Source: Tubulanus polymorphus (Eukaryota; Animalia; Nemertea). From it: a stretch of DNA of 64,000 bases. A program made the translations under genes and the position numbers. The notes beneath the pieces were generated by a model. It made no database searches, had not been told where the DNA came from, and saw nothing but the letters and a program-made list of their open reading frames with translations. The stretch is taken from positions 2,790,001-2,854,000 of the forward strand of contig NC_134036.1 of assembly GCF_964204645.1 (NCBI RefSeq), given 5' to 3'. Of this stretch, positions 2,527-35,572 are shown one piece after another (within the stretch, counting starts at the first letter, position 1; every line of letters starts with the position of its first letter).

Positions 2527-2904
2527 TAAAGCTTTTCATATGCAGGAAAAGTTCAGTTTTTTGAAGATCAAAAGCTGTCAACATAAGCTCCACTACTTCC
2601 CAGCAACTTTTATTTTCAGCCAATAGCTGTCAACATAAGTTCCACTTCTTCGCAGCAAATTAGTACAGCATGAATGTCAAAATGTTATCACAGAATGAGG
2701 ACAAAACAAGTCTACATTTATAAGTTTCACTTTTACTCTTGGGTAACCCTTATGTCAAAATGCTTTGTAAAGTACTTCGTTGCAGTGCTATTTATATACA
2801 AGAATTAGGCCAACACATGTGTTTCAGGCTCAGACAAATACTATAACGCACATACAGATAGATAGGAGTTGTTAGAAGAAAGTTCTTATTCGGAACACGA
2901 AAAT

Positions 2905-3186
2905 ATGGTCTCCACGAAACATTGCTGTTACGGTATTTGTAACAGCGACTCCAGGTACGATTACCGACCGCACATGCAAGGAGTTAGATTCATACCATTC
3001 CCGAAACCGAAAAGGTATCCGGCTAAATGTGAAAGATGGTTAAAGGCTTGCGGACGTCCCAAAGAGGATTTCAACGCGAACAAAGTCACGAGGAACACCT
3101 ATATTTGTTCGAAACATTTCGTTGGACAAAACGGGCCCACGGAGGAAAATCCGGATCCAATACCCGCTACAGCATGTCGCGAACAA
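2905..3186 (+). CDS. THAP-domain protein, coding exon 1 (C2CH THAP zinc finger)
   Basis: MVSTKHCCYGICNSDSRY...FIPFPKPK...CERWLKACGR...YICSKHF...P shows the THAP signature (C-x4-C, FP, W, C-x2-HF, P). The exon ends CAA|gtatgt at 3186, phase 0. Confidence 0.9.
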
Positions 3187-3501
3187 GTATGTAGAAATTC
3201 TTTCATTTTCAAACGAATCTAATACCGGTATTATTCAAGTATACAGCTATTTTACGATACAGCTGACACAGTAGATCAAAATGATAGGTCCGACTTTTAG
3301 ACAATATATCTCTTATTTGTTTATAAAGATAATTTGTAGTTATCCAAGTTCTGACAAAAGTTTATATTCAGTGTTTTTCTGTAGAATTTTAGAGGAGCTG
3401 CATTGATTGTATTACATTATGGCTGCTGAACTAGCAAGGCTTTCAATTCCCCCCCCCCAAAATACTGAAACTTCAGCTTAATTTGTGTGTAATCTTCTAT
3501 T

Positions 3502-3751: not shown

Positions 3752-3857
3752 CGCTTCAAAAACATGTTGTGGAGAACAATACTTTGATATTCTAAGTAGA
3801 AAAAATCAGCCGTATTAAATTTTGGCAAAGTAATAATCTATCTTGTTTTACTTGAAG

Positions 3858-4304
3858 GTCGAAGCATTTAATTGTCGCAAACGAAAGGCACCAACAGCGC
3901 GAAAATCAGTTAACAATAAAAAACGTTTGGACGCGGCTGAAACTTTAGTGAATTTAGCTGATTATTTCCCGAATAATCACAGCACTATTCGTGAACTGCC
4001 GTCTACGTCTGGTTTCGAAGCTGATCGAAAATTAGACAGTAAGTCATTTTTTAAGGATGCGGAGACTCAAACTGAAACTCAGTGCAAATGCCGCGTTGGA
4101 ATCTGCTACAGCGACACATCTTGTCAGACCGCAATTTCATACCCTCCGGTTCATGACGAACTTTCTTTGCAAGTCAAAATCGAACCGTTGGATTCGTGCG
4201 ACGAAATAAACGCATCGGCAGATTGGGAAGAACCGGACAATACGTTGTCGTTGTCGTGGGATACGTTCGTAAAACTTGAGGACGTAAAAAACGAGGTTGA
4301 ATGA
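3858..4304 (+). CDS. THAP-domain protein, coding exon 2 (basic NLS-like stretch, TQT motifs, stop); joined protein ~242 aa
   Basis: Acceptor tcttgttttacttgaag|GTC at 3858 is phase 0 and in frame with ORF 3843..4304. Encodes RKRKAPTARK, DAETQTETQ and DTSCQT; TGA at 4302-4304. Confidence 0.75.
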   Translation, partial: VEAFNCRKRKAPTARKSVNNKKRLDAAETLVNLADYFPNNHSTIRELPSTSGFEADRKLDSKSFFKDAETQTETQCKCRVGICYSDTSCQTAISYPPVHDELSLQVKIEPLDSCDEINASADWEEPDNTLSLSWDTFVKLEDVKNEVE

Positions 4305-6579
4305 TATTCTGGTAGCGGACATAAATTTTCAAACCTCAAGTGGACATTTTCAAACCTGTCTAAAGATAATGACTGTCTCTAATAAAACTCTCTTCGGCCA
4401 AGAGTCAATCTACTCTCTTCATCAATCTACTTATTTGTTATACATTTTATTTGTAATTATGATTGATGATGAAATAAATTACATTATATTACAAAGATAA
4501 TACAGTAAATCTTGCCTTAAATATTCATGTCAGGACTTTTGATGAACATGGACAAAAACGATATCATTGTTCTGATTTCCTTACATATTTTTCCTATCCT
4601 AAACTCAGATGTCACTCAGACCAATTTTTCTGGTCTAAGTGTTGTGACTTAGGCGAGGTTAACTGTACTACATATAAGTAGTAGAAATAAATAGATTACG
4701 CATTTAGAACACAATTTAACTGTAGACCTAGGTATAGTTAGTTAGTTAGTCAGTTAGTTGACCTATTGTTAACACCCGAGTCAGATCAGTTAATTCAAAT
4801 ATCATACCAATGACTTTTCCCAGGGCCTACAGTAGTTAGACTTATCTAAACTATTTGTTTACTTTATCTTTTTTTAAATCTCAATGCTGGTCTTTTGGCT
4901 TCCTGGTGAATGATTTTTCTTCATTAAATAGTTTTGGAACAGAGGTTCTGGTGTCTTTAATGCAAAATTCAAGGTGAACTCGGTCAATGTGGTACTGCAT
5001 GCTTAATAATCAGCAGATTGCAGATTATTTTTGAATAATATTCTAATATCTTTTTTTTGGAAAAATAAAAATATCGTACGCAGTACTACTGAAATACGCA
5101 ATGACACTATAGCTAACTTACCTATATTCTACAGGTGCGAAGTCACATACACTTCAGGGGAAAAAACTTCCGAAAATAAATCTTCAATACTATATACACG
5201 CTAAATAATAATCCTGAAATCTCCTTCGGTTTTGGACGGAAACATGAAATGATAATCCCATAAGTAACTAATCCATTTTAAATATAAATCCCTGCGATGT
5301 GAGCAAGAAATAAACTTTTTTGCTATATATCCTATGCGAGTAGTGTTTTGTATTATAGCGATAACAATGTAGACTGAACTAGCATTGCCTTTACCAGGTG
5401 GAATAGGCCATTCATTCAATAGCGTTCTGAAGGGGTGGCAGAATAACTCTACACTTTATATACTATAAATATAGATTTAATATAAATATATTCGTTATTC
5501 GGCGAAAGTAGAAACGTAGCTGGGAAAAAGTTCACGTTTTCGATCGTATGCGTTTCTGCAAGTGTCTATTGACGAAAAAGAAATTTGTCGAGACATAAAT
5601 TCAAAATTCCCGAAACAAGAATTCTTTTATTGCTTTCGTTGTAAATAGAAATATTTAGCGTTCTTTTCATAGAAAGAATGTGGAAACAATTGCGTAACAA
5701 TCCATTCCTGAACTGGCGCTAAAAATATCTCTTAGTTCATAAGTTTGCTTGACAAACAGGAAGGACTAAGTTAGACAAATTAAATATCTGTCAATTATAG
5801 ATGAAATCCAATGAAAGAGAAATTTATTGAAACAAAAAACCACAAAGTTTTGGCTGTTGACTAACAGCCATCATCAGGGCGATTGACCAAAAACAGAATG
5901 TTGATTGAAGTATCTAAACTCATAGTATATTACATAAGCAGTGACTATGGTTCAGAAACTGATATGAAATGTGGTTTCATTTTGAGAAATCTTTTCTCAA
6001 TCATTTAATCCCAGTGTGTGACTTCTCTATACAACTGATAACTTATGATTTTTCAAAATATTTCACTCGATCTTCTTATCTACCTATAACTTGTGGATCG
6101 ACTAGGTTTAAAGACCAGTTTTAAACTTCAATCATAACTCACATGGATGTGAATGAATCAATTTGCAGGGTGTAAATTTTGCAATAAAACAAGTCTGGAA
6201 AAAAGATCCTCTTCCCGGAAAGTTGTAAGACAAAATAGATCTCCATGTGGCAAATCAGTAAATGAAGCCTTTCAAACAAGTGGGTTTAAAGATTGGTTTG
6301 GAAAATAAATTTGCAGGGGGAATCCTGGTCTTTGGAAAAGAAAACAGGTCTGAAACAAATGGGTCCTCTTCGAAGAAGGTTAAGAGAGAGAGAATACAGA
6401 TCCTTGTGGCAAATCAGAAAATAGAGATCCCTGCAAGAGGCACTAAAGTAAAATGCAAGGACGAATTCATCCGATTTTCAAGGAAAACATGGATGAGTGG
6501 AGCAGAAAAATTTCTAGGCCTAAAATGTTACAATACATCCATTTTTTCATTGACTCAAGTATTGATTAAGTAACATTCT

Positions 6580-6770
6580 TGAGTTTTCCAGGTTTTTTTT
6601 GGTAAAATTTGTCAAATTCCCAGAGTTTTCCCTGATTTTATCTAGATTTTTCAGATTCCGTGAGTTTTCCAGGTTTTTTTTGGTAAAATTTGTCAAATTC
6701 CCAGAGTTTTCCCTGATTTTATCTAGATTTTTCAGATTCCCTGAGTTTTCCAGGTCAGTGGCGCCACCCT
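6580..6770. repeat. ~81-bp tandem duplication of a dispersed repeat end (related sequence at ~30300-30385)
   Basis: tgagttttccaggttttttttggtaaaatttgtcaaattcccagagttttccctgattttatctagatttttcagattcc twice. Confidence 0.75.
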
Positions 6771-6820
6771 AGTGAATGGAGGCTATTCTATCGAATGAAA
6801 AACTTATTAACATTCTTTAC

Positions 6821-9800
6821 CTTCTTAGGATCCGTTTCTTCGTAAAGTTTATCAGCCTTATCCAACAATCGGCGATCGACTGCGTAACCTTTGGCGACAC
6901 CGCTGCTTTCGTCCTCTTCGGGAATTCCCTCCGGGAATGTCGTCCTCGACGACGGGTCGACGTCTCCGTCGTCGAACGAGTCGACCTGGATACTGATCTG
7001 ACCGGCGGACGTGAAAAATATCTCGCGTTTACTTTTAACGTCGGTCGGCGCGTGTCGACTCATATCGCCCCCGGCGTCGAGCGTCGGTTTCGATTGTTGG
7101 ACGCGATCGCGTTTTTTCGTAAGACGATGAACAGTCCAGCCGTCGACATTCTCGACGACGATCTCACGTTTACGCGCGGCGGCCGCTCTCCGAGCCGAAC
7201 GCTCCGATTTACTCTCCGGTTTAAAACCGAACTTTCTCGTCGTCGTCGACGATTTCTCGATGCTGTGACGTTTACGATGCGGTTTCGGCGGCGTCGGATG
7301 AACCTCCTCCGCGCGACCTTGAGGATCGTCGGTCTGTTCGGATTCCTCGATTTGACGCAGACGACGTTCCCGTCTCGCCGCTTTACGTAGTTTACGCTCG
7401 TGTTTGTATAACTCACTCCGCGATATTTCACCCTCCGTCGATTTCCTGCGTTCTTCTTCCGATTCGTTTTTCGACTTTTGTTGTAAAATGTTGCGATCGA
7501 CGAGGGCTCCGCGGATACGACTAACGATCGACCAGTTGTTGCCCGTCGCTGACGAGTTTCTATCTTTATCGCTTGTATCTACGACGACAGCTGTTGTAGC
7601 CGTTGCTAGGAGATGATCGTCTTCTCGGGAACATCTGTCGCCATCGATTGCGTCAACAATGTTTCTGTTTATTTTATTATCGATCGTGAATCTATCGCCT
7701 CCTCGGTCAGTTGTCGGCGAGGAGGACGACATATTCCCGCAGCCGTTGTTACCAGGCGACAAATTCATCGCATGATTGTTGATCGCTCGTAACCGTAGCA
7801 ACTCGGCACTGCCGTTTTCCCCGTCATCGTAGACGGACTCGACGTCGGCGTCGTAGCTAAATCGAACGTTCAAATGTCGATCGGACGGAAATTCCAAGAT
7901 GTCCGAACATCGGGAGCTCGATCGACTGGTTTTCTGGTCGACAACGTAGAGACTGTCCTCGTCGATTCGCTGCGGCATGACGGGTAAACTCGGCGAGTCA
8001 AGGCTACTCGTACCGGTGCTGCCCCCGTGAGATGACAACGATCGTAATCGCGATAGAAACGATGCCTCGCGTAATTCGGGCTTCGAATCCGAACGTTTAT
8101 CGTAATCGGGACTTTTCACGCTCATTGCTGCCGTAGCCGTGGTAACGCCGCTGTGCTTACCGCCACTTTTCAATTTCGAAAAGAACGAAACTTCGCGATC
8201 GTTGTTCTCGGAATCGCCGATGTTATCGTCGTAGTGAAACACACTCGACGCCACCGAGTCCGTGCTGTCCATTTTTTTGATACTCGCGATTCGCGAAAAG
8301 AACCACGGACTGCGTTCATTGTTACCATTGTTGCTATTGACGATACGATCGGCCTTACAGTTCGCGTCGAGACTTTCTCCGATTTTTCCACCTTCGCACG
8401 ATTTAAAAACGGCCGTCGGTGAATTTACGATATCGTCGGCCGTCGATATTTTCTTTGCGTTGGCTCTCTCGTCGTCGGGGTCGACAGCCGACTTTTTACA
8501 CATAAACCGCGAAAATACGGACGACTTCCCTGTCTCTTCCGGTTCGTCATTCGCATTTGTCGTCGATAGCAACGATGAGTACTCTTGCGCCGCGTCCGAC
8601 TCGTTCGGAGTCATCGTCGTGGATGCGAGTTCTTGCGACGACGTGCCGTTGCGTTTCAAACCGAATCCGGTGATTCGCGAAAATAGCGACGGTTTCTCGG
8701 TGACGTATTCCTCCTCGCTGTCGAACGAATAATCGCTACGATCCTCGGTGCTGCGCCCTGTTATCAGCGAGAAGAACGACAGTTTACCATCGCTCGATTT
8801 CACCGGAGGTGAACGCGATTTCGGCGATTTAATGGGCGCCTCATTGTTGTCGGATGATTTATTCGCGAGGAATCGCGATAAGAACGACGACCCTTCCGGT
8901 TGCGATTTGGGCGATATTTTTTCTACGTTTGTCGTCTGCTCGAGACCGATCGACTCGGTGCAGTCCGCGGACGTCTTCTCCGTCAAACTCTTTCCGATTA
9001 TGCGACCGAAAAATGAAGAATCAGTTTTCGGGCTCGAGGAAGCATCTTCGTCATCTTCCGCTTCGGGACAATCAAGTTCGTTGGTTACCTTAACGACATC
9101 TTCATTAACGCGCTTCGTACTCTGCTCGCTAGATGGCACTTTTGCGTATTGATTCAACTTTTCCGCTTTTGCGCGTAGATTAAAGAAGAACAACGATTTT
9201 GATTTCGGAGAATCGTCTTCACCGACGGTGGCGCCATCTTCTTCCTCTTCGACTTCGTCCATTTCCGTCGATTCGTCGACTTCCCGCGCGGCGATCGAAT
9301 CGCGGAATCCGGTGAACATCGATTCGAATCCTTTAACGAATCGATTTCCGATGCTGACTCCGCTCGATTTAACGATCGGCGTCCCGGGAACGCGATACTG
9401 AGCCGGATCGAAGTCCGAATGAACGCGTCCGTGCGATACGACGTCCGAACTGGAGACGCCGATTTCCTCGGTCTCGTCTGCGAACGTCACCGATCCTCGT
9501 TTGCGTGTGTCATCGATGCTGATCCTCAACGCGCTTTTCGCGCACGTCTCCTTCCGCGACGGATCTGACGATTTACGACTCGCGCGATCGTCGAAACTCT
9601 TCCCGCTCATCTGACGTCGTTTATCGATCTCTTTTTTCAACTCGCTGCCGCCCTTACTCGACGAGCCGTCCGAATTCCTGCGTCCAACGACGTCATCAGG
9701 CTGCGAACCGCGACGCTTCCCGGGGATCAGAGCGCCATCTAGCAGCAACTCGTGTAATTCCGATTGACTTAGTCGACGTATACCGCCGCCGCCGTTGATG

Positions 9801-12800
9801 TCGCCGCCATCTTTGGAATTTCGTCTCGGTTCATCTTGCGAATCGTGTGACGCTCTCAGCTGCTCCTGTCGAATATCGATGCTGTCTTTACTCGATCGTC
9901 TTAATCGATCTTTGCGGGTTCTTTTCATCGGTTCTTTCTTCATCTCTGTCGCCCGTACGCTCTTCCGACCCGCGCCGCCCGTTTTTTCCGTTTCTCGACG
10001 TGTTTTCTCCGACTGAACGCGAACGAGCTTCCGTCCGATGTTCAGTTCATCGTCGTCGTCACCGCAACAATCATCCTCGATGATTCCCGATTCGCGTCGC
10101 ATCTGTTTAAAACTAGTGCTCTCGACGATCTCTAAACTGGCGCTGGTTGCAAACGACCGGTCCGGCGATGAAACAATGTCCATGTTACCGTGCAACGGGT
10201 CACACGACGATAGATAATCGGTTTCGAGTGTCGTCGATGGCAAATCTAAACTCAACGAACTGGCTCGACTAATCTCGATCAACGCGTTGCGCCAATTCTC
10301 GCCTTTCTCGGCCAATGATCCGATATCGTAACCCTGCGTCACTAAATTCGGTACGAAATCAACGAGACTTTGTTCGATGAATTCTCGCGCGTAAATCGCA
10401 GCCTGTTCGTCGCACGTCTCCTCGTATTCGTCGCGTGTTTCCACGATTATCGAATCGACGATATCATTGATAATCTCGATTTGATACGTTTGATGCGCCT
10501 GTTGGATGATCTCGTTGACGAAGTCGTACGCGCACGTCGTCAACAGGCGGTCGCTAACGACCACGGGCGATGAAGTCTCCATCTCGCCGCTCTGTGATCG
10601 AAGGCGTTGGAATTCGTCCAAACTCGATTCGACCGACGTTTGTTCCGTGCAATTTTGATTGAGAATGTTGACGCTTTCTTGCAAAACGTCGTCGACGAAC
10701 TGCATAGCAATCGCCTCCTCAGACGCGGCCGCCTGCCGATTGGTCGATTCGCAACAATCGTAAATATTCACCGATTGATCGCCGCGACGACGACAAACCT
10801 CCGCTATCACCGTCGTAGATGACAACGCGTCGTTAACGGTATTGTTGGCGATTTCGCTGGTTCGTTCTTTCAAAACGTCGACGGCGTCTTCGATGAGTTT
10901 ATTGACGAAAAACGCCGAGAAATTAAAAATCTGTTCGTCGTCCGTGAGACTGTCGTCAAAATAATACGTATCGTCAAAAACGTGGACCTCGCGAAGACGA
11001 CACGACGATAACGTCGCCCCTGACGACGATGATGCGTATTGTTGCTGTAAGTCGGCGAGATCGACGAGCGAACACGTGTTACTGCCGATCGACGACAGAT
11101 CCTCGTCGCTGATGTCGCAATCGGACGCCGTGACGACTGAAGCTTGTTGCTGATCGCGTATGAATCGTACCCGCGACGCTGGCAGCGCCGCCTGCTGGTT
11201 CGAATCATGAACTATATCTCTAGCGATATCATGCGCGACGTAATTCCCATCACCTAACATCATCAGTTTATACGTTGTTGTCGCCGCGGCGTCCATTGTT
11301 GGCGGTTTTACATAATACTTCTTACGGCAAATACTGACAGCTTGGTCGATGATGTCATCGATGTAACTTTGAACGGTTGTTAGGAATTCCGGATCTTCGT
11401 TGTCGGCGGCGATTTGAGAATAACGGTATACGCGTGGTCGATGGCGTTGCCTATTCGGTGGTGGTGGTGGCGCCGCTGTACATGTCGTCGCGTTCAGCTT
11501 CGAATGGCGTTTCAAACACGATGGACATTTCCGGCGTTGTCGACGTCGTTGTTGCTCGGTAACTGTCATCTCGGCGATGTTCGCTAGGTTACGTTTATCG
11601 GGAATTCTCTCATCTCTTCGAACGTCGTGCGTTAATTTCTCCCAATTTTCAGTCGTTCTATCGCTACGTCGACGCTCGTCTGCATTGCCATCGGTTACTC
11701 GCTCGACTACAGTTGCTATGGTTCTACCGACTAAATGAGCCCGGGATGATGCTGTCCCTCGTTGCTCTGTGTCGACGTGCTTTGCTAGAATGCACCACAA
11801 TCGAGTCATATCCTGTTTTCCGAACTCGGCCGTCTCCGGATCCACGTCCTTGAGATCATCCGTTCCTTCGTGAACGACTTCTTCGTTTACTTCTCGCGCC
11901 ACCTGGTGACCGATTACTTCACCAGTAGAGCATTCCTCGGCGAGGTGCTTCCCCAGTTTACCCCAGCGCGTTCCGATTTGCTCCGGTTGCGTTTCGGCTC
12001 GTTGTTTTCCCGTGAAACTCTCGACGATTTCTAAACTCGATTCACGACGAATTTTGTCGATGATTTTGTCAGTGTCGATCGGTCGATTCTTCTTGGTGTC
12101 GTCGGATAGATGTTCCCCGAGTGTTGCCCAGCGCGGAGTCGCGTATTTCGACGGGCCTTTTTCGAAACTTTGCCCGGCGAATTCTCGTATGATCTTTATT
12201 GTCGTCTTCGATTTAGTCTTCTGCGCCGGTTCATCATCTTCGACGGTGTTGGACTGCGAAACGCCCTTCGAAAGCCGATCCCAATCTTCGTCGTAATCTC
12301 GACCGCTGCACGACTTCAATTTCTGCTCGTCATCTGCAGCGAGGTCATTTCCAAAAATATCTGTAACCACAGCGAAATTTGGACACGACTCCGAGCGCTC
12401 TTTGACGTCGAGTTCCTCGTCGTAGCTGGCGCTTCGTTCGGGAACGAGGAGGCGTCCGAGGTGATCCCATCGGTCTCGCGTACGGATATTCGGAATTTCT
12501 AACGGATTCGCACGCGGACGCTCGCTCTGCGCGAATATCTGATCACCACCAGGTGGCGTTCCCATCACCCCGCAATTCGATAGATCGTTCCACGAACTTG
12601 CTAAACCCGTTGATGATATGTTGATATTCAACGAGTCCATCTTCGATACTTCTGGTTCTGGTTGCATCGCTTTCTTGATGCACAGTTGTAATTTCAAAGC
12701 ATCGGCATCGATGGCGCCATCTATTGAATCCTGGCGTAGTTTACGTATGACTTCTTCTGGGTCAAAGTTCGGCCCATCGCGTTCATTCGTCAGGTTATTC

Positions 12801-14359
12801 AAACTGTTCTGCGGAGTCATGGGTTCGCAGTCTGTGTCACACAGAATACCGAGGTGGAGTTTCTTCTGGCGCACCTCCTCAAGTAGATATGCATTTTTGA
12901 TGCACGGTAGCTCCCCCTGCGACGCGTGAAGTTGCGTCGGATCCGCAAAACTCGTCTGAGGCGTCAACGTACGGTGACATTCGTCTTTTTCATTGTCGTC
13001 CTGGACGACTTCGGCGCTTCGTCGCAGAGCTTTCGACAACGCGGAGGAGCGCTCTTTACGTCGCATATCGAACGTGTCTTTCAACGAGCGTTCCCACGAA
13101 TTTTTCAAAATTCCCATCGGTTTCCGGTCCGGCGCAACGGTGGCGCTAGTAGCATCGGCGGCTTTGTTGTCATCGTCGGTGTTGTCGATCGGAAACGCGG
13201 CGAATTTCGATTCGGATTTCAAACAATGCGGCGAGTTGCAATAATCGTCTTCTTCTTCGAGAACATCGCTGAGATATTTCTGCAGAATCTTTCGCTTCTG
13301 TTCGACGTTGATCAGTTGATCGATGTTCGTCAGTTCGGGCATGCCGTGTTGCTGCATGAAATACTCGAATTTCTTATCGACGAGACTCGCGCTTTCGACC
13401 ATCGTATTATCGAACGCCGCGAACAAATCGACGCCGTCCGGACCGGCGACCCATTCGCGCAACTCGCGTAATTCAGAGATTTTCTGATTCCGTTCTTTCG
13501 CTTGTTCTTTCATTTCGTGGTCGCTGAGCATGCTCCCAGTTCGGAGAAACTTTGCCGATTTCGCCGCGCGATCGTCGTCGGGGCCGACGCCCCCGAGACG
13601 CATTCCTCCCAATTCGTCGAAACCCGTCCAACTCTTCCGTCGATGATCGTTCACCTTCTCGTCTTCATCTTCGTCTTCCTCGGCGATGCTGCGATACGGC
13701 GGCGTGTATAAATTCCCCGAGCCGATACTCGACCAATCGTAATGCTCTTTCATCGCACGTCGCTTTGCGCGGATTTTCTCCATGATCTCTGCGTTCCAGA
13801 AACTCGGCAGGCTGTTCTCGCGCGCGTAACGATCGAAATCCGTCTCCGGCGGAATATGCGGCGCTCCGCTTAACGATGTATTGTTCTTGTTGAACTCGGG
13901 ACAAAGCGGCGCGTCCGGCGTCGAAGTCGACGTCTTCGACGAGTCGTCCGATTCGGATTTAACGTCCGCTTCGTTGGAGTCGCCGAAGTTACCGAAATCA
14001 CGATCGATACTAAACTGCGAGCGGATACCCCATTGTAACGGTTTCGCGGCCGCGGCGGCCATCGGTAAACTAAACGCGTTGTAATTATCGCTATCGTCCT
14101 CGGTGAGCGGATCCGGCGTTACCGGGTAACCGCGCTGTTCTAGATCGCTCAATTCCTGATCGTCGCTGTCCGACGAAAGCGATTTCGCCGGTAATCCCGC
14201 GTTCAACATCATGTTCAACGAACGTCGTAACGTTCTATAGAGTTTATGCGAAGTGATGTCCTCGTTGCCGAGAATGAAGGTCGATAGTTTCGAGCCGTAT
14301 TTATGAAGCGGGATCAAGTCTAAACTCGGCACGGTGAACGCTTGCAGAGCGATTGTTAT
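6821..14359 (-). CDS. PRUNE2: prune giant alternative exon 8B (PRUNE2-like): DHHA2 C-terminal segment plus ~2460 aa disordered scaffold; may instead read through to the stop at 6788
   Basis: 7.5 kb open frame with acceptor tatatttttag|ATA ACA ATC at 14359, phase 0. The first ~48 aa (ITIALQAFTVPSLDLIPLHKYGSKLSTFILGNEDITSHKLYRTLRRSL) align with the short prune last exon. Candidate donor AAG|gtaaag at 6821; in-frame TAG at 6788-6790. Confidence 0.8.
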
Positions 14360-15132
14360 CTAAAAATATATAGAATTATCGTAGACTTAAGTTTCAGCCC
14401 TTAAAGTTGCTGAAAAAAGGTTAAAGATAACCGGCGGATAAATACCAGAGTAACAATAAAACTTTTAAATGTCAACTATCCATTGGTTAACTCTAACCAA
14501 CTTTTGAGCACTTTCGACCCCAGACTTCTAATTTGATCGGAGCCTACGTTAAATTGTTAAATCGATAAAATTTTTTCAAATGTAACTGAATTGAATTCAA
14601 CTGGCGAAAAGGTATTAATGTTGGAGGATCAAGGAAATAAGAAAAAAGAAATCAGTGTAGATCTATACACTTGAGCAAATATGACGAAGATTGAATTGAA
14701 AATCATGGTTTGGTCACATTTATCCATTCATTCATACCAGATGAATTTGGAGAAAAAAAACACCGACAGTGTCAACAACATCTACATGCATTTATGAAAA
14801 AAAAAAACGAAAATGACACTGAAAGCTACTGAAATGTGTAGGACAACATACCTCGGGTCCAGGAGTTTGAGTTATATTCAAAAGCACCATTATCATAGGT
14901 CTGAAGTTTTTCTACTGTTTTTACAGTTTACGGTAATGAATGAGATTCAGATGAAGTGATGTTCCATTCAAAAGATATTTGAGACATATTCGAGAACTAA
15001 AATCTATAGTGAAGTTAGGCTATTTTTTCGCGAGTTAAGCGTATCCAAAAATTTTACGTTGACACAAAATCTAACACAATGACACAAAAAATCGTTTATC
15101 TACAAAATTTTGACTTTCAAGTTTTATTTCGA

Positions 15133-15291
15133 TCACGTAGAAATGACAGTTTTCACGATCGGCAATATGGCTTTACGCGACGCGGCGATATTGCCTTGAC
15201 GATAGGCTATAAAGTCGGCTGACGGTACCGACCGAATCGGAGTGAGATCCAAAACAGGACCGGGAGTGTCGACGCGGAGTGCTCGGTCGAT
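15133..15291 (-). CDS. PRUNE1: prune short terminal exon 8A (PRUNE1-like; completes 368 aa isoform)
   Basis: Acceptor cgcttgcag|ATC, phase 0. IDRALRVDTPGPVLDLTPIRSVPSADFIAYRQGNIAASRKAILPIVKTVIST* matches the prune C-terminal QGN...SRK..LP motif. Confidence 0.9.
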   Translation of the reverse strand: MDRALRVDTPGPVLDLTPIRSVPSADFIAYRQGNIAASRKAILPIVKTVIST

Positions 15292-15907
15292 CTGCAAGCG
15301 AATGATGAAAACAAAGACCGAATTACGAAACAACATCGAAGTATTTACAGTGGACCCGAAACGCAAGTGGTTATTGAAACAAACAATCCAGAGTTGAAAT
15401 GAAATCGCCAAGTTCCACAAACAGATGGAAATAAGATCAGTTTCATAAAAATATTAAGGTGTATGCTCATCTGGGTTTCCCCAGGGTTTCCTTACTCACA
15501 ATTTGAATGTTATCACAGCTCCTATTCTTTGAGAAAACATTTATAAGACTTGTTTTAAAATTGCTGCATTTTTACATTTTGTTATTAGCACCGGTAGATT
15601 TTTCAGGTCAACACCAGTAACACTATCAACTTAAAGTCTTATGTTATAAAATATTATACTACTTAATTTCCTTGTCTAAAAGATGAGAAACTTTATCAAA
15701 ACTGAATCAACATTCCAACATTGTATGCATGGCTCACTGAAGTATCTTTGTAAGGGGTGGGAACACTTATTTCAGGGTCCACTGTAGGGGGAACACTTAT
15801 ATACATAAGACTACAGTGAAAATGTTGACATATCCAAAACAAGTTTAAACTAAAGAAAATAATGTGACCAACATAAATGAAATGCTGAAAGATATGCTGT
15901 AACCTAC

Positions 15908-16066
15908 CTTATCGCGGAGGCTTGGGTTTGTGGAGTATATAGCTAACTGACGTTCAATGCAATCATCAGTAGAGGGAGCCACTGTCAAGATGACGGCAGC
16001 GTCGGCTTTTTGTAGCGCGAGGAACTTCAACAAATCGGAATCGATTTTCGAACGATGGAGAAACGT
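15908..16066 (-). CDS. PRUNE1: prune coding exon 7 (DHHA2 domain)
   Basis: tttcag|ACG ... GATAAG|gtaggt, 159 nt, phase 0-0. Encodes TFLHRSKIDSDLLKFLALQKADAAVILTV...IERQLAIYS. Confidence 0.9.
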
Positions 16067-16143
16067 CTGAAACCGGTGAAAATTTTGATTTAAAAACAGC
16101 CACTATGGCAGCCATGTATGGTACTCGTCAATTTAAGGCTTAC

Positions 16144-16238
16144 CTCCAAGTGCACGGGCACAGAACTCATAGCGATTACAAACGAATTTGAAGTGACGAC
16201 TTTTAAATCTTTGCGTAAAATCTCCAAATTTGTCAACC
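16144..16238 (-). CDS. PRUNE1: prune coding exon 6
   Basis: ttttcaag|GG TTG ... GAG|gtaagc, 95 nt, phase 1-0. Encodes GLTNLEILRKDLKVV (prune/PPX1 L-x-KD-x-K motif). Confidence 0.9.
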
Positions 16239-16839
16239 CTTGAAAAGAAATTAACATGCTTAAAAGAAAGTCGAAGTGAGTGAAAGATGGAGGTACTGAA
16301 AAGGAGATTAATGCTACTGTCCATAAGATGGAGGTATTGAAAAGGAGATAGATCCAAATGTCCAAAAGATGGAGGTATTGAAGAAGAGATAAATGTGAAT
16401 ATCCAAAAATGTTGTATTCTTCCTGAAGCTGTTGATCCAAAATAGGAGTGACTTTTCGATATATTAACAGTTTGCAAATCTTTTAAGTAGGAACATTTGA
16501 TTCGGAAGTGAAAAGTTGTTTTGAAGCCAATGATGTTGGTGTCACAAAACTTTTTTAAGTGAACCAAGATGTTGCAATTATCAGTGAGAGATTCATCCAG
16601 TGTAGCGTTCCAGTGTAGCGTTAAGGTGCCAGTGTAGCGTTCTAACCACTGTGCCACCAAAGCAGCTTGTATCATTGAGAGGTGCTGCCATCTATTGAAA
16701 AAATTACCCGAACCAAAGCCGCTAACATATACCTAACTCGATTTAAAAAAATAACTTCTTGTGCGCACAATGACCTTTTCTCGACAATAAGAGTCGCCAT
16801 CTATGGCACGTTCTACTAACTAAAGCTTTTTGTACGTAC

Positions 16840-16995
16840 CTGTTATGTCCATTTTCGCGGTTTGTATCTCGGAGAAAATCTGTTTGCGTTCGACTTTCGG
16901 CATAAAATCCTCAAGTCGCGTTAAAACGTTGATGTCCTTATCGGTCGTTTTCTTCGCCTCCGGATTCAGACAGATCGTGTCTACTAATATCGTCG
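16840..16995 (-). CDS. PRUNE1: prune coding exon 5
   Basis: tttctatag|CG ... ACA G|gtacgt, 156 nt, phase 1-1. Encodes ATILVDTICLNPEAKKTTDKD...IFSEIQTAKMDIT (DHH-family I-x-x-D-T motif). Confidence 0.9.
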
Positions 16996-18001
16996 CTATA
17001 GAAACATAAAACAATAAAAAAACGTTAGAGAATAAGAGCTTCCCGCCGAATGACCTTAATAAGTTGGTTTGCGTATATGTGGCCGGTAAACCAACTGTTT
17101 CATCTTTGGTCAAGACATATCTGATATTACATAAGGCAATATGACCTTCAGGCCTACAAGTTGTTCTTCCCCATCATATGCCACTGACCAGTTTTATAAA
17201 CTCTACCTAATCTACTGTATCATCTAGCTATGTTACTGCTTTTGCAAACTTTCAAACGCTTTAGATAATTGAATTGACAAGAAGATGACTTTAAATAGTT
17301 TGATTAGCCACATTTGATTTGGAACAACTGTTAAAATTAAATTCTATTCTTATTTGGTGATATTTTATATATTTGCTAACTGTTTTATGTTTGCTATGCT
17401 ATCATTTTATCTATTTGCCCAATGTTTTATGTCTGAAATTTGCAAAGTTTGTTGATACATTTCATATATCAGATTATAAATGAATATCATTATCATCATT
17501 ATTCTTTGAGTATCAAGCATTTAGAATTTAATTGGAAAATAGATGAATCACCAACTTTATCGGGGAAGGCCATAGCCTATGAAGTCTATGGCGAAAATGT
17601 AAAATTTGCACCTAAGACATTTTCGCCTGCGGCCAAGTTTCCCCTTAGAATTGAATTAGAATGAAGTTGTGTGACCAACTTACCTTACAAAGTCTAAAAT
17701 AACTCTAAATTTGACCTAAAAAATCTTTTCTTGCTGTCAGGTATAATGCCCCTTTGAATTGAATTGGAACCAAGATATGTAACCATGTTAAAAACACAAA
17801 AGCCTAAAATCTAACCTAACAATTTTTATCAGTGGCCAATTTAATGTTTCAAGCACTCAAGAATAGAATTGAAAAGTACCAGTAGCAGAATTGCCAATTT
17901 TACTAAGTGAAGCCATAGCTTGTCAGAACTTACACTCTTCAGTAGCATTTTCTCCAACAAGTTACAAGCACTTCAAATCGAATTGAAAGACACATATTTA
18001 C

Positions 18002-18111
18002 CATGTAATAATCCCGCTATAACCGAGTTGAATTTGAATTTTTTACAAGCGATTAGTTTCTCGGCAACCAGTGTACTGCAACTTCCCACGCTTTCGATTG
18101 TCATCTTAGCC
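18002..18111 (-). CDS. PRUNE1: prune coding exon 4
   Basis: Not in the ORF track. tttgtttccag|G GCT ... CAT G|gtaaat, 110 nt, phase 2-1. Encodes AKMTIESVGSCSTLVAEKL (VGSCxTLV motif). Confidence 0.92.
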
Positions 18112-18934
18112 CTGGAAACAAACGCAAAGCGGAATATTAGGTAATTCTACAAATCTCCCTAAAAATATTATGATAGCTTAACTGATAATAGCTGCAATCA
18201 CACGACCACTTTTGACCTGGGCCTGAACCAATCTAGGCCTGTAACTACTATCCACACGAGTGTCAAATGGGCCTGTGCCAAAAACGCTGGACCAGGCCCA
18301 ACCAAATTTTTAGATTTTTTTCGTTTCTCCACCCACTGAGCACCACTCAGGGCATTATCAGCAGGTTTGAGACTTTTACAAGGAGAGAGAGGCCAGAGGG
18401 CGACCATCAACCATGAAACACTGCCACTGCCACAAGTATTTAAAGCTAAACCCTGGATCGTTGAGAGACCAGTACTAAAAAGTTCGTTTTTTTCCACTGA
18501 TGTTTCGCAGTTGATTTAGAAAAGGAAAGTTTCCAATACGTTTTCTATAAGCCACAGGGAAACCTATTAGGGAGATTCAAGCTTTATTTGGCCGTTTATC
18601 TGCGGGAAAAATGCAATAAACTACTCCAAGTTGCTTTATCTGGTGAACCCCTCTCGTTCAGTGGCTGCGGAGATAAAGCCAATAATGAAATGCCCACGAT
18701 TTACTTCTAGTTCCAATCAGTCAAACTATGTCGGCATAAGCTTCATGCCTACAGGCAAAATCCGGCTTAGCTCCGACTGTATTTGAGCACGAGGGGAAAT
18801 TGAGTTCGATGCGTATAATTAGTGAAAACTTGGGGAGGAAATTCTTCCCGATGCTGATTTATTCTCAACAAGTGAATTCTGCAGAACAATTCTGGCATTT
18901 TTACTCCAGAAGATATCAATCAAGGAATGAAAGG

Positions 18935-20026: not shown

Positions 20027-20310
20027 CCTTCCATTTCGCACTGTTCTTTCGGCCGATGATCGATGACCTCGACGACGCAATCGGCGAATTCTTCGTCCGT
20101 CGACGACAATACGTGATGGTCGACCAACGACAATCGTAACCGCGATGATGCGTATAATGCGGCGAGATCGATCTCATCGCGGAATGTTAGATTATCGGAG
20201 CCGACCAGTTTGAACTTGTTCAGTAAATAGACGATCTCCGTGCGCAGGTTGAAATCGGCTTTCGGTATTCCGAGCACCGGAACGATCAACGTGAATTCAT
20301 CGGATTTTAT
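20027..20310 (-). CDS. PRUNE1: prune coding exon 3 (DHH catalytic motif)
   Basis: aattttag|ATA ... GAA GG|gtaaga, 284 nt, phase 0-2. Encodes VPVLGIPKADFNLRTE...FRDEIDL...LSLVDHHVL...VVEVIDHRP. Confidence 0.93.
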
Positions 20311-24205: not shown

Positions 24206-24313
24206 TTTGTCGAGAAAATACGCGTACGAAATGGCCGAAATCGCCGAGTCAAGGTCGCAAGCTTCGTTGCCGATGACGACGTGAATGCAGCTGTACGTGT
24301 CGGCAGATGAGAT
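24206..24313 (-). CDS. PRUNE1: prune coding exon 2 (DxD motif)
   Basis: Not in the ORF track. tttttcttcag|ATC ... AAA|gtaagt, 108 nt, phase 0-0. Encodes ISSADTYSCIHVVIGNEACDLDSAISAISYAYFLDK. Confidence 0.93.
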
Positions 24314-29331: not shown

Positions 29332-29898
29332 CTAGTGGTCCGGGCGCGTCGGGGCGCCGGTCAAATTCTCGCGCAGTAAATGCATTTCGTTCAACGCTTG
29401 AGTCAAAAACGGTCGCACCGTGTTCAACTCCATCAACGTCAAAAAGTTCAACTTGGCGTTCGTCGAGTCGCTTTTCACGAATAAATCGACGCTACTGCGT
29501 AATTTCGACATTCGTAAATCCCAGATATCCTTAACGAGCGTACGCACGTCGTCCGCTCGCGGAATATCGTCGGCGGCAACGTTCAACAATAACTGCGACA
29601 CCTCGACGTAGAATTCGTCGGGCATTTCGGTGAAAAGTTCCGAATCGATCTCCGCCTGTTTCGTCGCTTCTAACGCTTCGACGTTCATCCACGCAGGTGG
29701 CGTTATCCGACATTTTTGGCGCCGTTTCAAATTGACGGCTAGCCACAATGGCACGTCGTCGACGGCGACAGCTGCCGAAAACGGACCGACGTCGCCGCCG
29801 ATCATGTAAAGTTTAGCGAGCGTAAAATTCGGCACGATCGTCACGGCGCGTTTCTCGGCGAAGAATTCGACGTCGGCCGGATCCATATAGTCGTACAT
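29332..29898 (-). CDS. GINS2: DNA replication complex GINS subunit PSF2, intronless CDS nested in prune intron (alternative ATG at 29886)
   Basis: MDPADVEFFAEKRAVTIVPNF...GPF...VPLWLAVNLKRRQKCRITPPAWM...IPRADDVRTLVKDIWDLRMSKLRSS...LTLMELNTVRPFLTQAL is full-length PSF2. Acceptor gtatcgttttag|GCG at 29940. Confidence 0.95.
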   Translation of the reverse strand: MYDYMDPADVEFFAEKRAVTIVPNFTLAKLYMIGGDVGPFSAAVAVDDVPLWLAVNLKRRQKCRITPPAWMNVEALEATKQAEIDSELFTEMPDEFYVEVSQLLLNVAADDIPRADDVRTLVKDIWDLRMSKLRSSVDLFVKSDSTNAKLNFLTLMELNTVRPFLTQALNEMHLLRENLTGAPTRPDH

Positions 29899-32800
29899 TG
29901 TTGTCGTCACCGTGGCCGCGGCGCCCGTCGATAGACCCGCCTAAAACGATACAAACAGAAAAACGACGGATGGTAGAGTGAATGAAACAAAAAAAATACA
30001 ATGTGGTGGAGGTGTGTGGTGCTAGTTGGGGATAGGGTAGGAATGGAGCTGAAGGTACGGCTGTGTTATACTAAAGTTGTGCGGTACGATCTCTAGAGCT
30101 CTGGAGTCGTTCAAGCTATTTAAGTTTACGCGATTTGGACTTCGGGAAGGGAACCTCAGTAGGGTGGCCACTTTCCGCCTGTTCGAATATCCTCCTGAGT
30201 GAATCAGAGAAATTCCTTGATCTTAAATGTTACAATTCATTCATTTCTTACTGAATTATGCACTAATAAAGAACTACATGGTCAATAACATCATTCAATT
30301 CCCCGAGTTTTCCAAGTTCTTGGTAAAATTTGTCAAATTCCCTGAGATTTCGCCCTGATTTTTGTCTAGATTTTTCTGATTCCCATAGTTAACCTGATTT
30401 CTAAGTTAAGTGGCTTTCCTACTAAGGCATTGATACAAGTTGAACGGTGAGGGCAATTACCAGAGCATGCTTGAAACATAAATGAAGTGTGAATGGGTTT
30501 AAGGTCGACGACCCTGAAGCAGTGGATTTTAGTTTGTACGTGGTAGTGATGTTTAAAAGAAGTCAGTAAGGGTTTGAGAAGGGCATGCATGCGAACAAAT
30601 ACTCCATGAAAACTAGCTGCCGAGTCTTTATCAATTTGTAATTTCATTCACGTTTCAGTTCTTGTTACCAATTCCGAAACTAAAACGTTTGTGAAGCACT
30701 TTACCAGATATTCCTATCTTTCGTTATTTTGGATTTTAAGAGTGTTCAGTGTATCATGCTCTCTACTTCTTAAAGTGCAAGGCAATTTCGCAACAACGGC
30801 AAGCACATTATCATGACATTCAATGCAGACATTAATCAAAAGGTCCGATTTAAGTGAAATATTGCCAATCTTAATCTAGCTATAAATAATTTTCCAATTC
30901 ACCAGTTCATCCCTGTCTTATTATTAAACTGTTTTCATCTGTTTTACCAATTACAAATTAAACACCTACTGCACGACTGGGGGTGTTTTTTTTACAAGTT
31001 TTACGAAACAACATCAAGATGAAATGAGATGATAGAAAGAAGACTAGTTCGACTAGTTCAATGGATGGGTTAAGAAGTTTTCGTCAACTTATCCAACAAG
31101 ATTCATGGGAGCCATTGCACAACAAACATTGAAAATTCAAAAAATTAAGTCTGGACAATAAAAATTCTCTCAAATTCCAATGTTTTATCTGGGTTTCTGC
31201 CATTCACAGTGACTGGATTTATACTTTCAAGTTCATAACATTTTCCAAGGCATGCTCTTTAACTATCATTAACGTTAGTTTATCAAGATTCGATGGATCT
31301 TCTTCATCTTTTCTATATCGAACATATCCCATCAATGTCAAATTTCTCTCTCCTATCGCTCAAGATGAAGATTCTATTTAAGTAAGTGATAAATTTTCCA
31401 CATGACGAGACGTTGAACGTTTAAATCGGTATCTGAAAAGTCGATCGTATGCTTTAGAGTATTTCTGTACATTACAGAGACATCAAACAAGATACTAAAA
31501 CTGCCTGAAGATACAGATTGAGGTGATACAGGTGGAACTTCTTCTTCACGAACTAAATAACAACAACAACGACGGAAAACACATGCAATGATGGAATACG
31601 CTCACAGCGAAGAGATTAAAGCTTTGAACTGTTGTTGGAACATCTTCTCTTTAAGCGGGAAGGATGGTTTACGATGTTACAGAAAGGAAATGATGGAGAC
31701 TGATAGCAGAGGGATGGGCAAACCTAGTTTCAGAAAGTAAAGGATGTGGAGACAGGAGAGTCGAGCAAAAATTCTTTACTGATGTTGTTGATGAGTGAAA
31801 CAAAAGGATGAACAATGATGAACTTCTTTGACGAACACAAAACCTGGGAATGGGCAAATAAACGTTCCCAATGTTGGCTAAAGCTATTTGAAGTGAAGTG
31901 GAGATGAGTAATGACAGAGAAGATGATGATGTAGACAAAAAGAACAGGGAAGGGATGGGAGGCAGGTTGTCTCCTCACATTAGGCAGAATGTTTGTAATA
32001 ACAGCCATACTGTACCCAGCAATGTCCGGTATTGCCGTCAACACTACGATTTAAGACACTATTTTAAACCGGTCATCGTTTTAGAGAATATTCTACTTAC
32101 AATCAGCCTTAAGATCATTAATGGACTTAATACACGACTAATTAACTGAGCCCTTGGAGTTTAAGTACATTGTTCCCTCAGATGCACGAATTCAAACTTG
32201 CCAAATCAAAAAGTACTGCAAGGGCGATTTTCAAATAGGGCCTTCGTAAAAGTGAGCACACCATCATGTCACATTTAGGTGGCACCTGGTTGATAACGGT
32301 GATCTTTCCATACATTTCTCGGATAAGCAAATTTCCAGATATATCATTTTCAAATTTCCTGATATCCCAGTACTATGAGAACCATGTTAGTTAGCGCACC
32401 AAGGGTTGAAGAAGGTATCAGTGCAGAGCCTAATGGTCGCTGGTTGGTGAAGATGATTTTCAAGAAAAACTACTGAAGAAAGTTGCCCTTGGGCAAGCAA
32501 TTGATGTATCAAAACTATGCTATGTGAAGTGTACAGTGAAATTCCCGTATATTTCTTGGATTAGAGGAAAATCTATAAAATTCCCAAATTTTTCCAAAAG
32601 GGAAAATGTTATTCCCAGGTTCTTCCAGATTTCCCAGTGCTGTAGAAACCACGCAAGTTGTCAACCAAGGGTTGAGGTAGGTATCAGTGCACAGTATGAA
32701 ACCACAGACACTGGAACAGGGTTTGTAACAGCACTGTGGGTTCGTAATGATTCAAATCTATCATTACCTGCTCGATGAGATATTTCAGTAACTCGAGTAA

Positions 32801-35536: not shown

Positions 35537-35572
35537 CAGAGCGGATTTTGCATTCTTCAGAAACGTTTCCAT
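35537..35572 (-). CDS. PRUNE1: prune first coding exon (METFLKNAKSAL); the exon itself starts at an acceptor at 35623
   Basis: AAAATGG Kozak context; CTG|gtaagt donor, phase 0. The peptide resembles vertebrate prune N-termini (ME-x-FL...K-S-x-L). Confidence 0.8.

Follow-up and report, generated by a model that had tools for sequence, protein, structure and literature searches.

The prune gene of the nemertean Tubulanus polymorphus, together with a 7.5 kb coding exon that follows it and a BNIP2/BCH gene lying directly downstream, is the subject of this report. The gene resides on the minus strand of a stretch of 64,000 nucleotides (nt) of contig NC_134036.1 (NCBI RefSeq assembly GCF_964204645.1, positions 2,790,001 to 2,854,000 of the forward strand), hereafter termed the window; its exons were mapped from splice consensus and reading frame, and domains were scored exon by exon. 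Sequence reading places the coding part of exon 1 (METFLKNAKSAL) at 35537..35572, where it ends in the phase-0 donor CTG/GTAAGT, while splice sites and frame define exon 2 (ISSADTYSCIHVVIGNEACDLDSAISAISYAYFLDK; 24206..24313, phase 0 to 0), which covers the region of DHH motif I. The core of the DHH domain is encoded by exon 3 (20027..20310), which matches the yeast exopolyphosphatase PPX1 (2qb6) with E=8e-6, and the conserved Asp/His motifs of this domain are present as GNEACDLDS in exon 2 and as VDHH and IDHRP in exon 3. Exon 4 (18002..18111) and exon 5 (16840..16995) are followed by exon 6 (16144..16238), in which the DHHA2 domain starts, and by exon 7 (15908..16066), whose 53 codons constitute the middle of DHHA2 and which is in phase 0 at both ends, with AAG/GTAGGT as its donor. 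Exon 6 alone matches Pfam DHHA2 at profile positions 15-42 with 19.3 bits (E=0.0015; cut-off 27 bits), and this match is the sole one in a whole-genome profile search of the 268-Mb assembly. Since the DHH exon, exon 3, is also present as a single copy, the genome contains one prune locus.

Transcript evidence comes from four public runs of the same organism (X1-X4), which were compared over window positions 12600-18300 as assembled contigs only. X4 represents spliced RNA and leaves the introns without contigs; X1 covers the introns evenly and behaves as genomic DNA. A single X4 contig of 1102 nt joins 18002-18112, 16839-16995, 16144-16237, 15908-16066 and 15132-15291, and thereby supports exons 4 to 7, including the junctions 16995->18002, 16066->16144 and 15291->15908, in accordance with the splice sites. 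The 421 nt of this contig that remain upstream equal the sum of exon 3 (284 nt), exon 2 (108 nt) and 29 nt of exon 1, an assignment made by arithmetic and not by direct alignment. Its last block corresponds to exon 8A (15133..15291), which is entered in phase 0 at the acceptor ttgcag/ATC, encodes the tail of DHHA2 with GNIAASRKAILP, and comprises 52 codons followed by TGA (15135-15133). An AATAAA polyadenylation (poly(A)) signal at 15123..15128 lies 4 nt past this stop codon. Exons 1-7 and 8A amount to 368 codons and, because the predicted exon 7 to 8A junction (15908->15291) is present in the X4 contig, the short isoform is confirmed: the PRUNE1-like form of 368 amino acids (aa) is real. The contig stops at 15132, one base past the 8A stop and ahead of AATAAA, probably because a heterozygous site broke the assembly here or because a short 3' end was clipped.

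The acceptor ttttag/ATA at 14359, located 772 nt beyond the 8A stop, opens exon 8B (6821..14359), a giant exon of 7539 nt and 2513 codons that is in phase 0 at both ends, terminates in the donor AAG/GTAAAG and occurs once in the genome. Sequence reading bore out the coordinates, phases and translations of an initial annotation made from the sequence alone, with donor 15908 and acceptors 15291 and 14359 all in phase 0, as well as its statement that one exon stops after 52 codons and the other stays open for about 7.5 kb (2513 codons). Its description of the two exons as mutually exclusive was abandoned: the two exons share the same phase, but 8A is terminal and the lengths are 156 nt vs 7539 nt. 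As 8A possesses its own stop codon and poly(A) signal, it is an alternative last exon that competes with read-through splicing to 8B, and the pair does not constitute mutually exclusive cassette exons.

The layout of 8B comprises a DHHA2-tail-like start of 47 aa and then a long low-complexity region; in its translation several amphipathic helices of the form FVxxIIxxA, e.g. YDFVNEIIQQAHQTY, were seen at 10355-11375 (-). The exon has a G+C content of 52% and a CpG observed/expected ratio of 1.91, vs 0.45-1.0 in the adjoining introns. X4 contigs cover patches of 8B (13364-13745 and 13980-14150), and the exon is therefore transcribed. Moreover, 24 variants distinguish the X1 DNA contig from the window between 12600 and 14359, and 23 of them alter a third codon position of the 8B frame without changing the amino acid. 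Six variants, at 8B residues 9, 10, 14, 27, 35 and 36, lie ahead of the first Met, which is residue 50, and an in-frame TAG overlaps the acceptor at 14359. Because synonymous variants precede the first Met and a stop codon abuts the acceptor, 8B must be translated as an internal exon that receives its reading frame, in phase 0, from a coding exon further upstream, the variants leaving the partner exon undefined. A first exon of its own with Met50 as the start is thereby dismissed, and these variants are the strongest evidence gained here. At its other end, a read-through tail (VKNVNKFFIR, then stop; 6788..6820) is translated only if the donor at 6821 is not used, the frame closing 11 codons past this donor, and neither AATAAA nor ATTAAA occurs within 780 nt downstream of the stop. 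A short dispersed repeat (translated ...NLENSGNLTNFTKNLE...) has copies just past the stop of the 8B frame, at 6547-6772, and in prune intron 1, at 30266-30405.

A scan of the assembly with CRAL_TRIO_2 returned a match 3.4 kb beyond the start of the window, on the same strand as prune. Six exons were delineated there, within C12:2780001-2790000 and all on this strand, and are numbered in continuation of the prune exons: exon 9 (C12:2788016-2787884, phase 0 to 1), in which an ATG directly follows the acceptor, exon 10 (C12:2787465-2787214, phase 1 to 1), exon 11 (C12:2787013-2786674), exon 12 (C12:2786592-2786461), exon 13 (C12:2786295-2786209) and exon 14 (C12:2785813-2785715). Exon 11 matches BNIP2 (PF12496) with 79.4 bits (E=4e-22), while exons 12 and 13 yield scores of 27.6 and 18.9 bits with CRAL_TRIO_2 (PF13716), the matches of both families together spanning C12:2786199-2787013. 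The succession of a BNIP2 region and a CRAL_TRIO_2/BCH domain is that of the BNIP-2 family (group-I BCH), and PF12496 has one copy in the 268-Mb genome. The phases of 8B and exons 9-14 agree (chain 0->1->1->2->2->2), the phase-0 donor of 8B fitting the phase-0 acceptor of exon 9 over an intron of 8.8 kb. One locus thus presents, on one strand, DHH, DHHA2, a giant eighth exon, BNIP2 and BCH, which is the order of PRUNE2/BMCC1. No relatives emerged when metagenomes were scanned for exon 3 and for the BNIP2 exon, and a search of the organism's own genome for retrocopies preserving a junction found exon 3, 8A and the head of 8B all as single copies.

The reading that we favor, with reasonable but far from full confidence, is a single transcription unit with two outputs, between which the choice is made after exon 7, by splicing and polyadenylation at 8A or by splicing to 8B and onward to BNIP2/BCH. 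In the first route, which is shown by the exon 7 to 8A junction in RNA, translation ends after the 52 codons of 8A and the mRNA is cleaved at the AATAAA beside the stop, giving a PRUNE1/PPX1-type phosphoesterase of 368 aa with DHH and DHHA2 domains. In the proposed second route, the 8A acceptor and its poly(A) site would be bypassed and exon 7 joined to 8B in phase 0, whereupon the first ~47 residues of 8B would substitute for the 8A tail of the DHHA2 domain and be followed by ~2460 low-complexity residues; the donor at 6821 would then be spliced to the exons 8.8 kb downstream, which encode the BNIP2 region and the BCH (CRAL_TRIO_2) domain. Probably, then, the gene also continues via the 7.5 kb exon into the sole BNIP2/BCH gene and yields a PRUNE2-like giant protein, which would measure roughly 3200 aa and display the architecture of vertebrate PRUNE2/BMCC1. 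This reading is supported by the agreeing phases of exon 7, 8B and exons 9-14, by the transcription of 8B and its almost purely synonymous variants, by the position of the sole BNIP2/BCH gene downstream on the same strand, by the human gene structures, in which PRUNE1 ends with exon 8 and the giant exon of PRUNE2 is likewise exon 8, and by the poly(A) signals, one of which lies 4 nt past the stop of 8A while none occurs for 780 nt past that of 8B. Since the prune and BNIP2-type genes are each single-copy, the locus would cover roles that are split among vertebrate PRUNE1, BNIPL and PRUNE2.

A number of observations weigh against this interpretation, foremost on the side of the transcripts. Of the two isoforms proposed for one locus in the initial annotation, the short one is secured by the RNA contig, but the junction 15908->14359 was not observed among the contigs of the four runs, X4 having no contig on 14151-14359, so that the acceptor itself is not covered in the spliced RNA. 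A high-copy dispersed repeat in the 8A-8B interval (14419..14510), recognizable by a summed depth in the thousands in three runs and by many loose ends, lies 60 nt upstream of this acceptor; with its many divergent flanks it fragments assemblies precisely where junction evidence is needed. In addition, an X2 contig (13784-14463) runs unspliced across the 8B acceptor, X2 being a run that may be DNA or RNA. The depth of the X2 contigs as evidence on promoter use was set aside, given that there is one depth figure per contig and that the run may be of either kind. A small open reading frame (ORF) with a good phase-0 donor is found between 8A and 8B, the donors of exons 1, 2 and 6 are likewise phase 0, and 8B is tied to the BCH exons only by its phase, its strand and its proximity to them. 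Protein searches with the giant exon were equally unsupportive: phmmer with 8B residues 1-150 against 1.84 billion representatives gave no significant match, vertebrate PRUNE2 included, and word-indexed protein searches with residues 1-400, 1-300 and 401-2513 gave no matches. The lone phmmer match of the first 150 aa (P0001) was rejected as a repetitive junk ORF belonging to no Pfam family.

Similarly, the homology of the two N-terminal peptides, as initially claimed, is only weakly supported. When anchored at the exon starts, 8A and 8B align with a BLOSUM62 score of 15, which was reached by 60 of 20000 shuffles and ranks 8B 2nd-3rd among the 702 AG-preceded open 47-codon peptides of the window; for this single a-priori comparison p is about 0.003-0.004. 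The residues common to both in this alignment are I1, A4, L5, T9, P12, LDL, P18, S24, FI and GN. A local Smith-Waterman comparison of 8A with 8B gives p of about 0.05. The similarity is, however, not seen by BLAST, HMMER, Pfam, PDB or Atlas: 8B was not picked out when 8A was searched in the window by unbiased tblastn, nor when it was searched in the whole genome, PDB sequence searches gave spurious matches only, both for 8A and for a profile made from the two sequences, and look-alikes in the ESM Atlas comprised nothing usable for 8A or the head of 8B, the 8A control being equally blank. Pfam found nothing on the single-exon peptides of exon 7, 8A and 8B, so that DHHA2 profile scoring fails for the head of 8B and likewise for the genuine 8A; because the genuine 8A tail fails too, the Pfam, PDB and Atlas tests are without power on peptides of ~50 aa. 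A complex prediction in which exon 6, exon 7 and the head of 8B were entered as three chains scored 0.02, which weighs in neither direction. The homology between 8A and 8B is accordingly to be rated as weak and suggestive at the level of sequence; the anchored match speaks for the favored reading, its weakness against it. As to the proposed change of an SRK motif to SHK in 8B, the loss of Arg stands, since this Arg and the Pro four residues later are unconserved in 8B in either register, but MAFFT pairs SRK of 8A with TSH of 8B, and the pairing of SRK with SHK requires a shift by one residue. It is nevertheless reasonable to expect that the substrate-binding site may be altered in the long form.

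The most serious competing explanation, which we consider unlikely though by no means negligible, posits two adjacent genes, with prune ending at 8A and 8B belonging to the BNIP2/BCH gene, which would be transcribed from a promoter of its own between 8A and 8B. Splicing of a small first exon, e.g. 14896-14852, in phase 0 to 14359 would yield a BNIP-XL-like product devoid of DHH, in which case 8B would resemble the DHHA2 tail at its start by chance or as a relic. A candidate of this kind indeed exists in the 15-codon ORF MIMVLLNITQTPGPE (14852..14896, minus strand), which was obtained from an ORF and donor scan and offers an ATG as well as the phase-0 donor GAG/GTATGT; it is without an X4 contig and may be a product of chance, being one of several chance-level candidates within 772 nt. 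Vertebrate PRUNE2, too, has internal-start isoforms. The unobserved exon 7 to 8B junction, the X2 contig that extends from 8B into the upstream intron and the weak resemblance of 8A and 8B are all compatible with two genes. On the other hand, X4 has no contig on 14701-15082 despite its patches on 8B, which is a weak objection at such low coverage, and the 49 codons preceding the first Met are under purifying selection, while their best anchored match is the very exon they would replace. Moreover, the giant exon agrees with the human gene structures in being the eighth and in its phase (PMC2655648, PMC8569853), which likewise argues against separate genes.

Two further alternatives concern the ends of 8B. 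That the long form simply terminates within this exon at the 6788 stop, leaving the 6821 donor unused and the BNIP2/BCH gene to start independently at the ATG of exon 9, appears improbable. The closure of the frame 11 codons past the putative donor and the ATG that opens exon 9 right after its acceptor would suit such a gene boundary, and the joining of 8B to exon 9 is without RNA support; yet no poly(A) signal follows the stop within 780 nt, the strong donor AAG/GTAAAG has the phase that exon 9 requires, and the architecture that results from its use agrees with that of PRUNE2 (PMC3313917). Highly improbable, in turn, is the joining of 8B to a prune exon other than exon 7, which would deprive the giant protein of most or all of the DHH/DHHA2 fold. 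The phase-0 donors of exons 1, 2 and 6 would permit it, but long-range exon skipping of this extent would be unusual, 8B begins with a peptide similar to the one to which exon 7 is normally spliced, and in human BMCC1 exon 8 has exon 7 as its partner (PMC2655648), which argues by analogy for the same partner here.

Several further elements lie within the introns of the proposed unit. The 11.2-kb intron 1 of prune contains, on the same strand, an intronless frame of 202 codons (29335-29940 (-)) that encodes the GINS subunit PSF2 (PSF2_N 84.8 bits, Sld5 58.6 bits). On the opposite strand, the 8.8-kb interval from 8B to BNIP2/BCH harbors a THAP zinc-finger ORF (2869-3222 (+); PF05485, 42 bits), and an ORF of 153 aa without a Pfam match is located at 3843-4304 (+). 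The region of the THAP ORF may represent a domesticated or transposon-derived gene.

With regard to the vertebrate counterparts, PRUNE1 is a neurodevelopmental disease gene encoding an exopolyphosphatase, whereas PRUNE2/BMCC1 is a tumor-suppressor locus hosting PCA3, and the two are treated as separate paralogues. We know of no explanation for the origin of the fusion between phosphoesterase and BCH domain in PRUNE2. Human PRUNE1 and BNIPL are directly adjacent. On human chromosome 1, a single stretch of ~100 kb contains variants that are linked to both genes (PMC13486847). Exon 8 is the last exon of human PRUNE1 (PMC8569853), and in human BMCC1/PRUNE2 the giant exon is exon 8, which measures 6598 bp in a gene for a protein of 3088 aa (PMC2655648). 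The region of PRUNE2 encoded by the giant exon diverges fast even among mammals, with a reported human-chimpanzee dN/dS of 1.38 for exon 8, and in an early study homologues of PRUNE2 were not found beyond the amniotes (PMC2655648). For invertebrates, one BNIP-2-type gene has been reported, whereas the presence of four members in vertebrates was ascribed to the two genome duplications; certain BNIP-XL and BNIP-H proteins were noted to carry DHH/DHHA2 N-terminally (PMC3313917).

The arrangement described here fits an ancestral prune-BNIP2 unit, for which no published description was found in the literature. We tentatively advance the scenario, for which the odds may be somewhat less than even, that the ancestral animal prune locus was one unit leading from DHH/DHHA2 through a giant exon to BNIP2/BCH, with an early terminal exon giving a short enzyme; after the vertebrate duplications PRUNE2 would have kept the fusion, another copy would have split into PRUNE1 and BNIPL, and the other BNIP-2 paralogues would have lost the prune part, while the undivided state would be preserved in this nemertean. 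If one invertebrate locus indeed provides both forms, the fusion would predate vertebrates, the human PRUNE1-BNIPL neighborhood would be explained as a split copy of the prune-BNIP2 unit, and the locus would offer a simple system for the role of a DHH module tethered to a BCH domain. The value of such a finding would be mainly evolutionary and a matter of annotation, as no new mechanism is involved.

In comparison with known systems, the locus shares with vertebrate PRUNE2/BMCC1/BNIP-XL the DHH and DHHA2 exons, a multi-kb low-complexity eighth exon and a C-terminal BNIP2 region with BCH, its giant exon of 7539 bp and modeled protein of about 3200 aa standing beside those of human PRUNE2. Unlike its vertebrate counterpart, however, the giant exon resembles none of the proteins in the searched libraries to a detectable degree, the short terminal exon 8A precedes it in the same gene, and the long form is a gene model built from exons, phases and strand rather than a full-length transcript. 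It also differs from human PRUNE2 exon 8 in that 8B is under strong within-species purifying selection (23 synonymous : 1 non-synonymous). With PRUNE1, Drosophila prune and yeast PPX1 the short form has in common that it is a DHH/DHHA2 phosphoesterase and, as in PRUNE1, that it is encoded by eight coding exons of which exon 8 is the last (PMC8569853); in contrast to human PRUNE1 (453 aa), its 368 aa end right after the DHHA2 tail, without a disordered C-terminus of ~100 aa. The downstream part conforms to the BNIP-2 family (BNIP2, BNIPL, ATCAY) in being the single group-I BNIP2+BCH gene reported for invertebrates (PMC3313917), here directly downstream of prune; while human PRUNE1 and BNIPL are separately annotated genes, a 7.5 kb coding exon bridges prune and BNIP2/BCH in this case. 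Finally, the choice after exon 7 recalls the secreted and membrane forms of immunoglobulin mu and calcitonin/CGRP, where an upstream terminal exon with a stop codon and poly(A) signal likewise competes with downstream splicing. Unlike in these systems, the downstream exon appears to start with a diverged copy of the coding part of the upstream exon, and both products would therefore complete the same domain.

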